A stretch of 63,156 bases of DNA, counting the filler, from Choristocarpus tenellus KU-1152 (lineage: Eukaryota; Protista; Phaeophyceae): NCBI GenBank assembly GCA_964200185.2. It is 6 parts of 6 records of this genome, joined end to end, with 100 filler letters (N's around TTAATTAATTAA, not from the genome) between each part and the next. Parts side by side here need not be neighbours in the genome. Positions count along the whole stretch, not along the records: positions 22,326 to 35,502 come from CAXNAD020001563.1; 5 more parts are not named here. One strand, written 5' to 3'. The number at the start of each line of letters is the position of its first letter. The stretch's first letter is position 1. Under the pieces are notes generated by a model. The model did no database searches. It saw only the letters and a list, made by a program, of their open reading frames with translations, and had not been told where the DNA came from. The position numbers and the translations under genes were made by a program. This document shows positions 23,487-29,343 of this stretch, one piece after another.

Positions 23487-26400
23487 ATGGAAACTGTTGA
23501 TCCTGTTGTGTTACTGGAGAAGATTTGCTCCGCTGATCTCCCTTGGGAGCAGCGATCCTCCTCATCAAAGTTACTATTGGAGCTGGTGAAAAGTCAACGT
23601 GTGAGGGACTTCGACATCAACTACGACCTGGTTTTCAAGGCGGTGCGGGTGGGGTGGGAACACCGTGATGAACAAATGCGTAGCACACTGCAGGATTCTC
23701 TTCGTGGCTACATCAACATTCCGGAGTTCGATCCTTCATTGGCTTCCGTTGCCATCAACAATAGTTTTGTGGTCGAACTCTGTGGTCGCTTCAATGCAGG
23801 GGTGGACGGAGAGCGATTATTTCTCCGCGATATGTTGTATTGGCTTTATGAAAAGTTCCCAGATAGGCGGCGTCAGTTACGGCTGCAGATAGGAAGTCTC
23901 CTTTCGCGATTCTTCCTTTCCCCCAGTCGCCATACTCACATCGCGGAGGTGCTGGAGGTGCTGAGGCATGTGGTCAAGGGGTTCGCACCAACGTTACATC
24001 AGGTGCACTAAGGGTGGCACAACCTTTTTGTCTCACCATGGAGCTAGATTAAAAATCGGCCTTATTCGCAGTTTGAGGTGGTGATACAAAATCAGTAGAG
24101 TAGCGCAAATACGTTCTCGCAGCATGTATGATTGGGGCTAAAGGTACGACCGCTTCCTGTCAATCCTCCCTTGTACGCAGGCACATCTTCGTCTCCTTAC
24201 TGACATTCTTCTTCCCCTTCACATGCCAAATGATATGGCAGTCTGGAGGGACCAGCTTCCTCTGATTGGCACTTATCACGAAGAGCTGGTTAAGTGCATC
24301 GTTCCTTTTATCGAGAGGCAGCCAGCATTGGCTGAGGTTACAATCAAGGCCGTCGTGAAAGGCTGGCCAGATGGTTTTGAGTCCAACACTCCCAAGGTGA
24401 GGTGCTACTTGACAACTTGCTTTGAAATAGTGACTCTACCCTCCCTACTGCCCAGGTTTCCTTCCCTAGTGGTCCTTCGAGCAGCAAAATATAAGCCTCA
24501 ATGGGGAAGTAAGGTGGACGTAGGTGACAAAGCCTGTTCTATATTGGCAATCACCACTCCAAGTGGACGAGGTGCTGACGTTTTTGCTCTATACTTGTGC
24601 CCAGGAAGTGCTGCTATTGCATGAGCTCTCCATTCTCCTGCGCTTTGTTTCCGTGGAAGACTTTGATTGTATAGCGTCCTTGATCATACCAAAGGTGAGT
24701 GAGCGATGCTGGGTTTAAGATATTACAGCAAAGCCTTTGTGGCATGAATTGAGAAGTAGCATGATCTTATCCACCAATTTTTGAGCAAGTACAAAAGTGC
24801 AAAATTGTTATTTGCGTAATTGTGTAATCTTGATGCTATATGCAACAGATTGCAGGATGCCTTCGACTTGAGAACAGCCGGGTTGTGGAGCGTGCTCTAT
24901 TCCTTTTCCAGGAAGAGCATTTTCTCCAACTTGTTAAAGGACAGGATAACAATGTGATGTGTCTCCTTGTAGCTTCTCTTCTTCGTGATGGTCAGCCATT
25001 CTGGAACCCAACAGTGACAAAGGCAAGTGTGATTCATGAGTGGATGGGTATCCTTGGATTCTGGTCATTGTGTGCCAAGGATCTGTTACAAACAACCTGA
25101 GATGGTAATTCAGACAGTTCCAATGAACACCATATGGAACGGGGGTTTTGATTTTGCACAACTTTGGTGGACACTGTTCCATATTTAGTCATGTAGATTG
25201 AAAAAGTTTACAATCTGATAATGAAGACCTATCAATAATGTTGACTTTGATTTTGAACTCTATCAATTACCTTTTCTTGTCAACCCTCCACAAGAAATGG
25301 ACAAATTTGTCAAATTTGGTAGCTTCTCACTTAATTTGGATGGATTTGTATTTTTTTCTGGAGTGCTGGGCCTTGTATTCTACAACAGTGCTGCATATTC
25401 ATTTTTTTTTCTTATACCCCTTCTGGCATGTTGAAGATGACAGCCCATGTACTAGAGACTCTGGAAGGACTAGACTCTGAGGCATTTGCAGCAGTCTGTG
25501 AGACACTATGGGGAGGAAACAGTGGTACCAATGGTGCAGATGATGCACTAGGTATGGTCCATCTTCAAGGAACCCAGACCATTGCTGAGACATCAGGAAA
25601 GATCCAGTCCAAGTCAAATGAGGAACAGGTCTCGAAGGTTACTATTTTGTGCCTTATAACACTTTTCCTTTGTAGTCGTTGTATTGTGAGTAGGTGCAGA
25701 GTGTCCATAAAGGTTACACTCATCTACAGTATCTAGATAACAATAGTGCATTGAGTAAATGTTCAAAGTGGGTCCGGGCAACTCCAAATGCTGTGCTCAA
25801 TAGTTCATGTCTGAAGAATTTGTTGTGCTTGGTTCAGCAATGCGAATAACCTACACAAAATATTGTTGAACTTTGACAAACATATCCCTTCACACGACTT
25901 ATTTGTATGGTTTCACATTTGAAAATACTTTAGCTACTCTTTGTCCTCCATTTATGACTCCATTTCATGCAATACTGACATATCTTTGACAATTTAATGT
26001 TGACTGTAAGAAATCTGTGTTGTTGAGGTGTTGATGGCAATCTCTCCCTCTATATAGCCACTATGCGCATCAGTTGGTTTCAAATTTTAAATTCCGGTCT
26101 GGTACCAATATGTTCAACAAGGTGAGCCTGCAGTCATGGCCTTGCTCACAGTCATGGTAACTGCCTGAGCTGATGAAAATCTATGAAGTTATGACACTCA
26201 GGTACTACTCCCAAAGTATCAAGGCTTTTTGCCTCATTATTGAAGTCTGGTTCAAGCTTGCTCAATTGTGTTGTGCACATTTCAACATCATCTGTCATCC
26301 TTTTGTTGCTGTCTCTGCTTTGTCCCCCCCTCCCCATCAGAACATGATGCCAGCGACTCCTAGTGAAAATGCTAACCTTGCATCCCTGAAGGGTGGCATG

Positions 26401-29343
26401 GGTAACTGGCGTCCACCTAATCGTCGTGGCAAGTATGGCTCCGAAATGAAAGATATTTCAAGTGCTCCTCCCGTGACAATTACTGGTGTTGCACCATGGG
26501 CTAATCAAACACCTAAGAAACCAATTTCAATCCCTCATCAAGACACAGGTGGAACAATGATTGGTAGCATGTCTAAACAACTGCCCCCAACCCAGAGACT
26601 GAAGAGATCTCAGCCAGGCTTTGGTGCGAAGTCCCTGACTTCGAGTGATTCAAACTCTGGTGTTGGGGTGGAACAACAGCAGCAAATAGTAGAGCAGACA
26701 CTTACTGGTGGATGTGGCCGCACTGCAGGAACAGGATTGCAGCAAGTCCGGGCATTCATTGAGAAACTTAAACCACAAAAAAGGCATCGCACAGGTCCTT
26801 CATGGCAAGAATTGCAGATGGAGCCAACCCCTACATTACTGCCAAATCTCAGGTGTGTATTATGCAATACTAGTTTTGTTGCTTAGTGTACTAAGTCAGT
26901 TAAATCTAACATTGTCTTTCACTGTTCAGTTCTTGTTTCTCAAGGGGTTTTAATGTTGCCGTGCAGGTTTCATGATTTGGTGTTTGGCCAAGAGCTTGGG
27001 GAGGGATCCTTTAGTGTTGTGAAGTATGCACGACAAATTGTAAGGGGTGCACCTCAGAGTGAATGGCCAGAGTACGCTGTGAAAACCATATCCACCGACC
27101 GCATTGAGGTGAGTGTATATAGTGTGTATAGTGTGTATAGTATGTATGAACCTTGTCACCCTTGGACTTGCTATCAAGTTGTGTTCTCTATTTGCGTGAT
27201 CAGGGCAGCATACAGGGTAAAAGCTCAGGGGTGAAGGAACAAATAAACATGTCATATGAAGGCTTCCCAATTGTGGTCATACCACCCTTTCTTGTTATCA
27301 ATATACTTCTGTAAGATTGTGTAAGATGGCACCCTCTTAGGAGGCCAATAACCTGTCTTCTCCAAGTTTTTCCCTTGCCTCTATTTCCCTTCATTCTTGA
27401 TGGTAATGTGTTTTGATCAGCACTCAGTGTACCCATTTTGTAGGCCATTGTGTTTGAGTGCGGGGGTGCCCTGGCTCTCAGGGTAAGTAACGAGATAGGG
27501 ATAAAATTGTGCAGAAGGATATTTTTTATTCGGAGTAGGAAGGGAGAGGGAGAATAAAAACAATAGATGTATATAGTGCACAGAGGTTACAAAGTACAAA
27601 TTATATGAGAGCTGGAAGGGCTCATTTTTGAGCCAACATAACTGTAAGTGTTGGTTCAGTGTGGTTCTTTGCAGGGCATTTGTTTTGGTAAGGTTAGGTT
27701 GAACATTTTGCCACTCTGAGTGCTTTTTAAAATTTGAGATGAGGCCCAGATATTTACTATTGAACTAAAATGGATGTTGCCTTAAAACCTCCATGCAGGA
27801 ACTGCGGTATGAGAGGTCAATCACTAACGAGATAGCGTGTTTGCAAGTCTTGAGTCACCCAGGAATAGCTCGCTTGGTGTCTTCATTTCGATGGCGGGAT
27901 GGTGCATTCCTAGTGCTGGAGTATGCCTCTCGAGGTGATCTTCACACATATATCAAGGACACTGGTTCGCTGGATGAAGCATCCACAAGGTGCCTTAGAG
28001 ATTCACTATTGTTTTGCTATGACTTATCCTTGGTCAGAGTTCTTGCTGATAGGGTTCAGTGAGTTGGAATGTATTGCTCAATTGGATTGCCACCTTGAGG
28101 TTACAGGTGATTGATGCTTTGTCAGTCTCAGGAGGTTTACTGATGAAATCCTTTCACTTTTTTGTGGGAATGCATTCTGAGGTATGTACAACGAGGTCAT
28201 TTCAGATACGTACAATATGCAAGTATGCTTGGATTCGCTTCCATGCACCCAGATCTCTCTTGAAAGTTTTAGATCTTGAAAGTTCACCCGTGTCAAATGC
28301 TGATGTTACAAGGTTTGTTGTCGGAGAAGTGATTGCGGCACTGTGCAGTGTGCATGACTGTGGTTTCATTTATGGAGACCTCAAACCTGAGAACATACTC
28401 ATCACAGAAAGTGGCCATATTAAGGTGACAGACTTTGGTGCATGCCGCCCAGTCACTGAGGTTGCCAAGGGCATCCTGAAGAAGAGCAGGAATGTTCTAT
28501 GGGAATTGAGGGATGGTGACTGGAGGTTGGCTGCTGGTCTCCCTGCGAACCCCACCTACACCCGCCCCCTCCTCAGTGGCCGTTCCACAATTGAAGAAGA
28601 GGATGAAGAGATGCGAGCTGAGGGCACTGCAGCTTATCTACCACCAGAAGTAGTGGGTGGTGGTATGCCTAGCAGAGAAGCAGATGCTTGGGCTCTGGGA
28701 TGTGTAATATACCACTGTATATCAGGAAGGCCACCAGTGTTTTCAGAGGATGATAATGAGACACTTGCTAAGGTGGTGAAATTTGCATCCATTCCTACCG
28801 ACTCACCTGAGGGCAATAATGAGAAGTGTCTACCAACTCTCCCCTTGTCAGTTTCCAAGGATTGCCGAGCACTTGTTGGAGCCCTCATGGAGCCAGATCC
28901 TGTGATACGTGTGGGTATAGAGGAAGCTGCATGGCATATGTTCTTCACTAGTGAACAAGTGGATGTCTTCAGTCTTCACTGCAACAAGCCTTTGGAGTTG
29001 GTGCGGGGAAGCGTGAAGCCTAACCCAGATGCAGCTTGGTCACGAAGACAAAATTCTATGATCTGGGCACCAATGCCACAAGAATATAGGTGGGTTTAAG
29101 CGGGCACGTAATTGAGCTGCTTGATGGACTAAAATAATCTTCAATATATAGCTTCACATCAGCACAGCCTGTATTTGAACGTAAGGCAAAATCACCCTTT
29201 CAATTAACTCTTTGTATCTTTGTTGTGTGCACAGGTGTGATGAAGTGTCCAGTGATATGATGCCCATAGAGGAGACCGAGGTGGAGTGCGATGCAGAATT
29301 TGTTCCATTTAGGACAATGGCACTTGTTCCTCTTCTTGAGTGA
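23487..29343 (+). CDS. PP2A B56/B' regulatory-subunit domain fused to a PDK1-like Ser/Thr kinase, ~975 aa. Exons 23487-24002, 24181-24396, 24605-24694, 24849-25022 (GC donor), 25437-25637, 26341-26852, 26967-27108, 27799-27989, 28313-29089, 29235-29343
   Basis: Ten exons join in frame. B56 motifs: ERLFLRDMLYWLYEKF, IAEVLEVL..VVKGFA, ILLPLH, YHEELVKC, WP...NTPKEVLLLHEL, VVERALF, FWNPTV. Kinase motifs: FGQELGEGSFSVV, YAVK, LSHPGIARL, LVLEYASRGDL, YGDLKPEN, TDFG, GTAAYLPPE, DAWALGC. Confidence 0.85.

Follow-up and report, generated by a model that had tools for sequence, protein, structure and literature searches.

Why would a gene join, in one chain, a targeting subunit of protein phosphatase 2A (PP2A) and a protein kinase? 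This question is raised by a gene located at positions 23487-29343 of a 63,156-nucleotide stretch of DNA (the window) from the brown alga Choristocarpus tenellus KU-1152, whose product starts with a B56 domain and finishes with a PDK1-like kinase. To our knowledge, B56 domains are otherwise known only as PP2A subunits. With somewhat more confidence than doubt, we propose that B56 has been repurposed here as a cis clamp for the tail of the kinase and is not a tether to PP2A.

One gene for a B56 domain and a kinase

The ten exons (Table 1), when joined, encode 975 amino acids in frame with a single terminal stop, which matches an earlier note made from the sequence alone (about 975 amino acids and no internal stop). 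Domain searches were run exon by exon, and the exons were joined only to count length and stops. Pfam B56 (PF01603) was found above its curated cut-off in exons 1, 2 and 4 (E = 6.5e-14, 2.5e-8 and 2.4e-8), with profile positions 117-363 matched in order, and Pfam Pkinase in exons 8 and 9. Between them lies a linker (approximately residues 360-525) rich in P, S, G and Q and predicted to be disordered. The domain order described in the note thus stands, and so does the lack of a PH domain, for which there was no Pfam match in any exon or scanned homologue.

Three runs of one study cover this stretch, and X1, one piece of DNA across the whole of it, may be where the sequence comes from. No record describes X3 as RNA; it is taken to be complementary DNA (cDNA) because the joints in its contigs are spliced. 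All nine introns are present as spliced joints in these contigs, which support individual junctions and not one continuous transcript. The three junctions predicted in the note are among them: 25022/25437 (intron 4, spliced from a GC donor), 25637/26341 (intron 5) and 26852/26967. For intron 5, donor 25628 is also in use, giving a 972-residue isoform that is three amino acids shorter. Introns 4, 5 and 7 are found in unspliced contigs as well (depth 46, 63 and 32), and because of this a minor kinase-only transcript may exist besides the fusion.

The public protein P0291 of C. tenellus was used as the whole-chain reference, and residue numbers of the kinase and the tail are those of P0291. It is identical to the gene in exons 1-4 and 6-10. 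Compared with the cDNA joints, it is mis-spliced at introns 4 and 5 (25023-26340), with two additional residues where exons 4 and 5 meet and about 30 intron-derived linker residues before exon 6.

A family of B56-kinase proteins

Sequence searches retrieved 204 proteins (173 non-redundant) with B56 and the kinase in one chain, from brown algae, xanthophytes, eustigmatophytes, diatoms, chrysophytes and haptophytes, and from dinoflagellate and choanoflagellate transcriptomes. The named sources include Ectocarpus, Scytosiphon, Discosporangium, Tribonema, Chrysoparadoxa, Nannochloropsis, many diatoms, Spumella and Chrysochromulina. Those of Polykrikos, Biecheleria and Diaphanoeca come from transcriptomes and could derive from prey or contaminants, though the Diaphanoeca copy has several close relatives. 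No oomycete name appeared among the matches, although no search aimed at oomycetes was made. Moreover, the ESM Atlas holds a 159-member cluster with both domains.

Family members are often encoded by one uninterrupted open reading frame (ORF), and relatives carry both domains in ORFs of 3078 and 3342 nucleotides. In Skeletonema marinoi, a 398-amino-acid entry named "PDK1" corresponds to the kinase half of this fusion, with B56-coding DNA upstream in the locus (L001 2112-6351). Given these uninterrupted ORFs and the upstream B56 of Skeletonema, the fusion is real and old. The FastTree trees are unrooted and have no outgroup, and for this reason no origin or transfer is claimed.

The note had supposed that the architecture might exist unannotated in other stramenopiles. 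It does exist there, but it has already been named: Ectocarpus siliculosus CBJ26298.1 and Tribonema minus KAG5176227.1 both bear the double name of PDK1 and PP2A regulatory subunit. No paper about the family was found in the searchable literature, and a Phytophthora kinome paper does not mention a B56-kinase. Hence, the family is annotated by name and apparently unstudied.

Two further predicted proteins are worth recording. P0156 (Cymbomonas, 860 amino acids, partial) has a family-type exon 1 N-terminus and a B56 without kinase, being possibly a truncated green-alga member, and P0187 (Symbiodinium, 1065 amino acids) presents B56 and Sulfatase together, which may be a gene-model artefact.

The B56 part and its LxxIxE pocket

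Concerning the structure, the B56 fold is kept over approximately 330 residues (Z = 31-32 against B56gamma and B56delta). Residues 1-348 of the AlphaFold full-chain model (107 sequences; mean predicted local distance difference test score, pLDDT, 81; predicted template modelling score, pTM, 0.68) align to residues 35-402 of B56gamma with Z = 31.9 and a root-mean-square deviation of 3.1 Å, and the sequence match to B56gamma has an E-value of 9e-38. The internal loop 104-130 of human B56gamma has no aligned counterpart. The acidic internal loop of B56 touches the catalytic subunit of PP2A (PMC10485637). None of the 162 members whose N-terminus is complete has the motif of this loop, versus 50/61 canonical B56 proteins, and DSEDxxER (DSEDPRER, residues 172-179) is present in 0/162 versus 55/61. 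Judging from these sequences, assembly of a PP2A holoenzyme has probably been lost. The suggestion of the earlier note that the chain tethers a kinase to PP2A is weakened, since the loop contacting the catalytic subunit and DSEDxxER are absent.

The residues of the LxxIxE pocket were taken from PMC4930772 (H187, Y190, R197, R201, E226, I227, S230, I231, K240 and H243). Family-wide, Y190 (96%), R197 (97%), R201 (90%), I231 (85%) and H243 (61%) are kept, while H187 and E226 are kept mainly outside diatoms and changed in diatoms. In exon 1 of the Choristocarpus gene, the equivalents are H187 to Y, Y190, R197, R201, E226 and I231 to V (human B56gamma numbering). Considering the polar positions invariant in canonical B56 between B56gamma residues 160 and 253, non-diatom members keep 6/11 in the pocket and 0/13 elsewhere (Fisher p = 0.003).

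A candidate ligand in the C-terminal tail

A possible ligand for this pocket is found at the end of the same chain. Of 146 tails, 137 carry the motif (L)xxIxE-x(2,3)-E...F, whereas shuffling gives 3.9. In members other than diatoms it mostly takes the classical LxxIxE form with an additional Glu, and R201 is the residue that binds the extra Glu of strong LxxIxE motifs (PMC7108865). Diatom tails have mostly lost the Leu and keep the I, the E and the second E; in the B56 domain of diatoms, H187 and E226 are changed too. In plain counts, the motif Leu and H187 co-vary (26/31 versus 4/88).

In the full AlphaFold model, with B56 present, the tail (931-960) has pLDDT values of 87, 93 and 94 and no regular secondary structure despite them. 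In the kinase-only model, the values for residues 934-963 are 62, 80 and 72, and residues 779-781 and 926-928 form strands that the full model does not have, as would be expected from a substrate-like pairing of the RRQxS segment with the activation segment. The tail is off the path of the PKA and Akt hydrophobic motifs in both models, where the alignments end at 928-931 or 907. An ordinary AGC hydrophobic-motif reading of the tail was also considered and is supported by neither model.

The kinase domain

PDK1 is the best match in the PDB by sequence (E = 6e-37, next family 2e-29) and by Foldseek (template modelling score 0.87-0.90), a kinship that rests on these matches of sequence and fold and not on a tree with PDK1 outgroups. 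The note's description of a PDK1-like kinase is appropriate in this sense only. The catalytic Lys, the alphaC Glu, the catalytic Asp and Asn and the DFG motif are conserved in 98-100% of 173 sequences, with K605, E624, D699, N704 and D717 at 100%, and because of this conservation the kinase is most likely active.

On the other hand, the regulatory hallmarks of PDK1 are absent or changed. The kinase is non-RD (HRD in 0/204), and the position of PDK1 S241 is Arg in 95%, with no activation-loop serine. The PDK1-interacting fragment (PIF) and phosphate pockets of PDK1, which we take to comprise K115, I118, I119, V124, R131, Q150 and L155, are altered as well (K115 to T in 80%, V124 to E in 82%, R131 to I/L/V, Q150 to R in 90% and L155 to A/V). 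A C-terminal PH domain, typical of metazoan and most plant PDK1, is missing. Since the HRD Arg, the activation-loop serine, both pockets and the PH domain are lost or changed, the residues indicate that this kinase is PDK1-like in sequence and fold only and fails as a true PDK1. Its activation segment is long (66-115 amino acids), and its invariant R722 and E780 may pair and hold the activation loop without phosphate. Entries of the family labelled PDK1, Aurora-related or PKA should have their annotation corrected, as they do not have the PDK1 regulatory hallmarks.

The linker motif and an exitron

The linker carries the motif PPxTxTGVAPW in 194/204 members, with one to four copies each, and AlphaFold leaves it unplaced. 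A single X3 contig shows an exitron joint at 26427/26728 with a depth of 88. This splicing removes 100 amino acids, PPxTxTGVAPW included, and gives an 875-residue isoform. The motif is probably a partner-binding site that is dropped in the exitron isoform. The exitron donor, GCAAGT, is identical to the donor of intron 4. As a weak lead, the beginning of the motif (26467-26484) fits the calcineurin PxIxIT motif in 176/265 copies; at a key PxIxIT position, however, Ectocarpus and Scytosiphon carry Ala.

Proposed mechanism

From the anatomy and conservation described above, which are direct observations, we infer that the tail contacts the pocket, which way this regulates the kinase, and that PP2A is no longer bound. 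In this reading, a protist kinase family would have acquired the B56 HEAT domain as an internal clamp that regulates the kinase, the tail motif binding the B56 pocket of its own chain and closing the chain in a loop. The position of the tail would set the activity of the kinase, since a non-RD kinase needs no activation-loop phosphorylation. With the tail docked on B56, the RRQxS segment would lie along the AGC-tail path; with the tail released, it could pack on the activation segment as a substrate does, which would make S925 a likely autophosphorylation site or pseudosubstrate. Outside LxxIxE proteins or phosphorylation of the tail may flip the switch.

The second proposal of the note, that B56 serves as a docking module, fits better than the tether, but the likeliest ligand would be the protein's own C-terminal motif instead of a substrate. 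A broader version, in which these proteins form a widespread protist kinase class whose B56 reads short linear motifs (SLiMs), clamps its own tail, is opened by outside LxxIxE proteins and swaps its docking motif through the exitron, is plausible, but we lean slightly away from it; under this version, kinase and PP2A-B56 would share one docking code. If the clamp is true, a phosphatase adaptor would have been repurposed for kinase control in a family that spans diatoms, brown algae, haptophytes and further protists. The mechanism is directly testable, given that Nannochloropsis, Ectocarpus and diatoms carry the family and are genetically tractable.

Evidence against the clamp and other explanations

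Several points weigh against a cis clamp. The contact is deduced from model confidence and conservation and not from coordinates, and structural alignment to the closed form of B56delta could not show the tail in the pocket. The tail stays moderately ordered without B56 (pLDDT 72-80), so that some of its length may lie on the kinase instead. In the pocket, R188, K240, S230 and T184 are changed and H187 is a Tyr in the Choristocarpus gene, while human B56 no longer binds when it carries H187A (PMC4930772). When kinship is taken into account, the co-variation between the Leu and H187 is no longer significant (one or two informative pairs, p about 0.5), and the loss of Leu, H187 and E226 in diatoms is roughly one evolutionary event. 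Finally, the C-terminal B56 helices keep many canonical residues (H255, Y263, H264, K300, E307, E344, W382 and N383 are matched) that could still be usable for PP2A contacts, so that PP2A binding is best regarded as unlikely.

These matched residues, together with the whole B56 fold, speak for a retained PP2A B subunit that would bring the A/C core to its own kinase as a kinase-phosphatase holoenzyme, with the tail perhaps closing the pocket as in B56delta. We consider this unlikely, as the acidic loop and DSEDxxER are lost in every full-length member, and so are most of the remaining surface residues in 160-253 that canonical B56 keeps invariant. A docking in trans, where the pocket would hold outside LxxIxE substrates and the tail would recruit a separate PP2A-B56 to dephosphorylate the kinase, agrees with the textbook LxxIxE of non-diatom tails and the kept pocket core. 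It seems distinctly unlikely: diatom tails do not have the Leu needed by canonical B56 while the Leu sub-pocket of their own B56 is changed, and the model confidence of the tail rises when its own B56 is present.

The tail could also be an ordinary AGC C-tail lying on the N-lobe (W919 as the NFD-like aromatic, S925 as the turn motif and F958 as the hydrophobic motif), with B56 as an unrelated scaffold. The full model does follow the PKA/Akt tail path up to 928-931, and the order retained without B56 would suit this idea. Nevertheless, alignments to PKA, Akt and an Akt-PIF chimera end before the hydrophobic motifs in both models, and the near-invariant I947 and E949 and the selective conservation of the pocket are left unexplained, which makes it improbable. 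An erroneous gene model that merges two adjacent genes would account for the partly unspliced intron 5, the Met of its own in exon 6 and the kinase-only entries. This is largely refuted and deserves hardly any credence, given that cDNA shows spliced joints on both sides of the linker exon, that relatives encode both domains in single ORFs and that B56 lies directly upstream of the kinase-only entry in Skeletonema.

Features of the locus

The features of the gene are collected in Table 1. In intron 5, 33 bases (26133-26165) match another contig in all three runs, being a short repeat elsewhere in the genome. Downstream, nine ORFs between 29794 and 35000 gave no Pfam match; GC-richer stretches within this interval may be exons of another gene.

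Table 1. Features of the B56-kinase gene, in window coordinates.
Feature	Position	Strand	Content
Exon 1	23487..24002	+	Start codon and first half of B56 HEAT fold; pocket residues; no acidic internal loop
Exon 2	24181..24396	+	B56 fold; H243 equivalent; family-specific WRDQ insertion of about 10 amino acids
Exon 3	24605..24694	+	B56 fold
Exon 4	24849..25022	+	B56 fold; GC donor at 3' end
Exon 5	25437..25637	+	Final B56 helices and linker start; alternative donor 25628
Exon 6	26341..26852	+	Disordered linker and conserved N-terminal extension of kinase
Exitron in exon 6	26429..26728	+	300 nucleotides, in frame, GC-AG; one contig of run X3
PPxTxTGVAPWA linker motif	26467..26502	+	Near-invariant in family
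Exon 7	26967..27108	+	Kinase glycine loop 26998-27015; catalytic lysine YAVK 27073-27084
Exon 8	27799..27989	+	Kinase alphaC helix and hinge
Exon 9	28313..29089	+	Non-RD catalytic loop 28371-28394; DFG 28431-28439; C-lobe
Activation segment (exon 9)		+	Long; terminal RxEGT 28614-28628
WxRRQxS motif (exon 9)	29037-29066	+	Near-invariant
Exon 10	29235-29343	+	Holds C-terminal LxxIxE-like motif
LxxIxE-like motif with acidic residues downstream	29257..29286	+	Exon 10; proposed cis ligand of B56 pocket

Comparison with known systems

The orthologues in Ectocarpus (CBJ26298.1) and Tribonema (KAG5176227.1) share the architecture and are known by name only. Canonical B56/B' proteins (PF01603; human PPP2R5A-E) share with the family the HEAT-like fold and a core of the LxxIxE pocket residues, though not the whole pocket, whereas the family is fused to a kinase, does not have the acidic loop or DSEDxxER, does not keep the acidic patch E276/E310/D313 and carries the WRDQ insertion of its own. 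PDK1 and the yeast Pkh kinases are the closest to the family kinase by sequence and fold, which differs from PDK1 in being non-RD, in having neither a PH domain nor an S241 equivalent, and in its long conserved C-tail.

Kinase-PP2C-cNMP fusions of Phytophthora and plants likewise join a kinase and a phosphatase-related domain in one chain, also in a stramenopile (PMC3019232). They combine a catalytic PP2C with an inactive kinase, while the family combines an active-looking kinase with a non-catalytic adaptor. The precedent for the proposed clamp is the closed form of PP2A-B56delta, in which a cis-SLiM (L595TASQE600), an LxxIxE-like motif in the C-terminal part of that chain, closes the pocket (PMC10769853), as could happen likewise in the family. 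In PP2A-B56delta this motif inhibits a phosphatase holoenzyme, whereas in the B56-kinase family it lies beyond a kinase domain, in a chain where the PP2A contact elements are missing.

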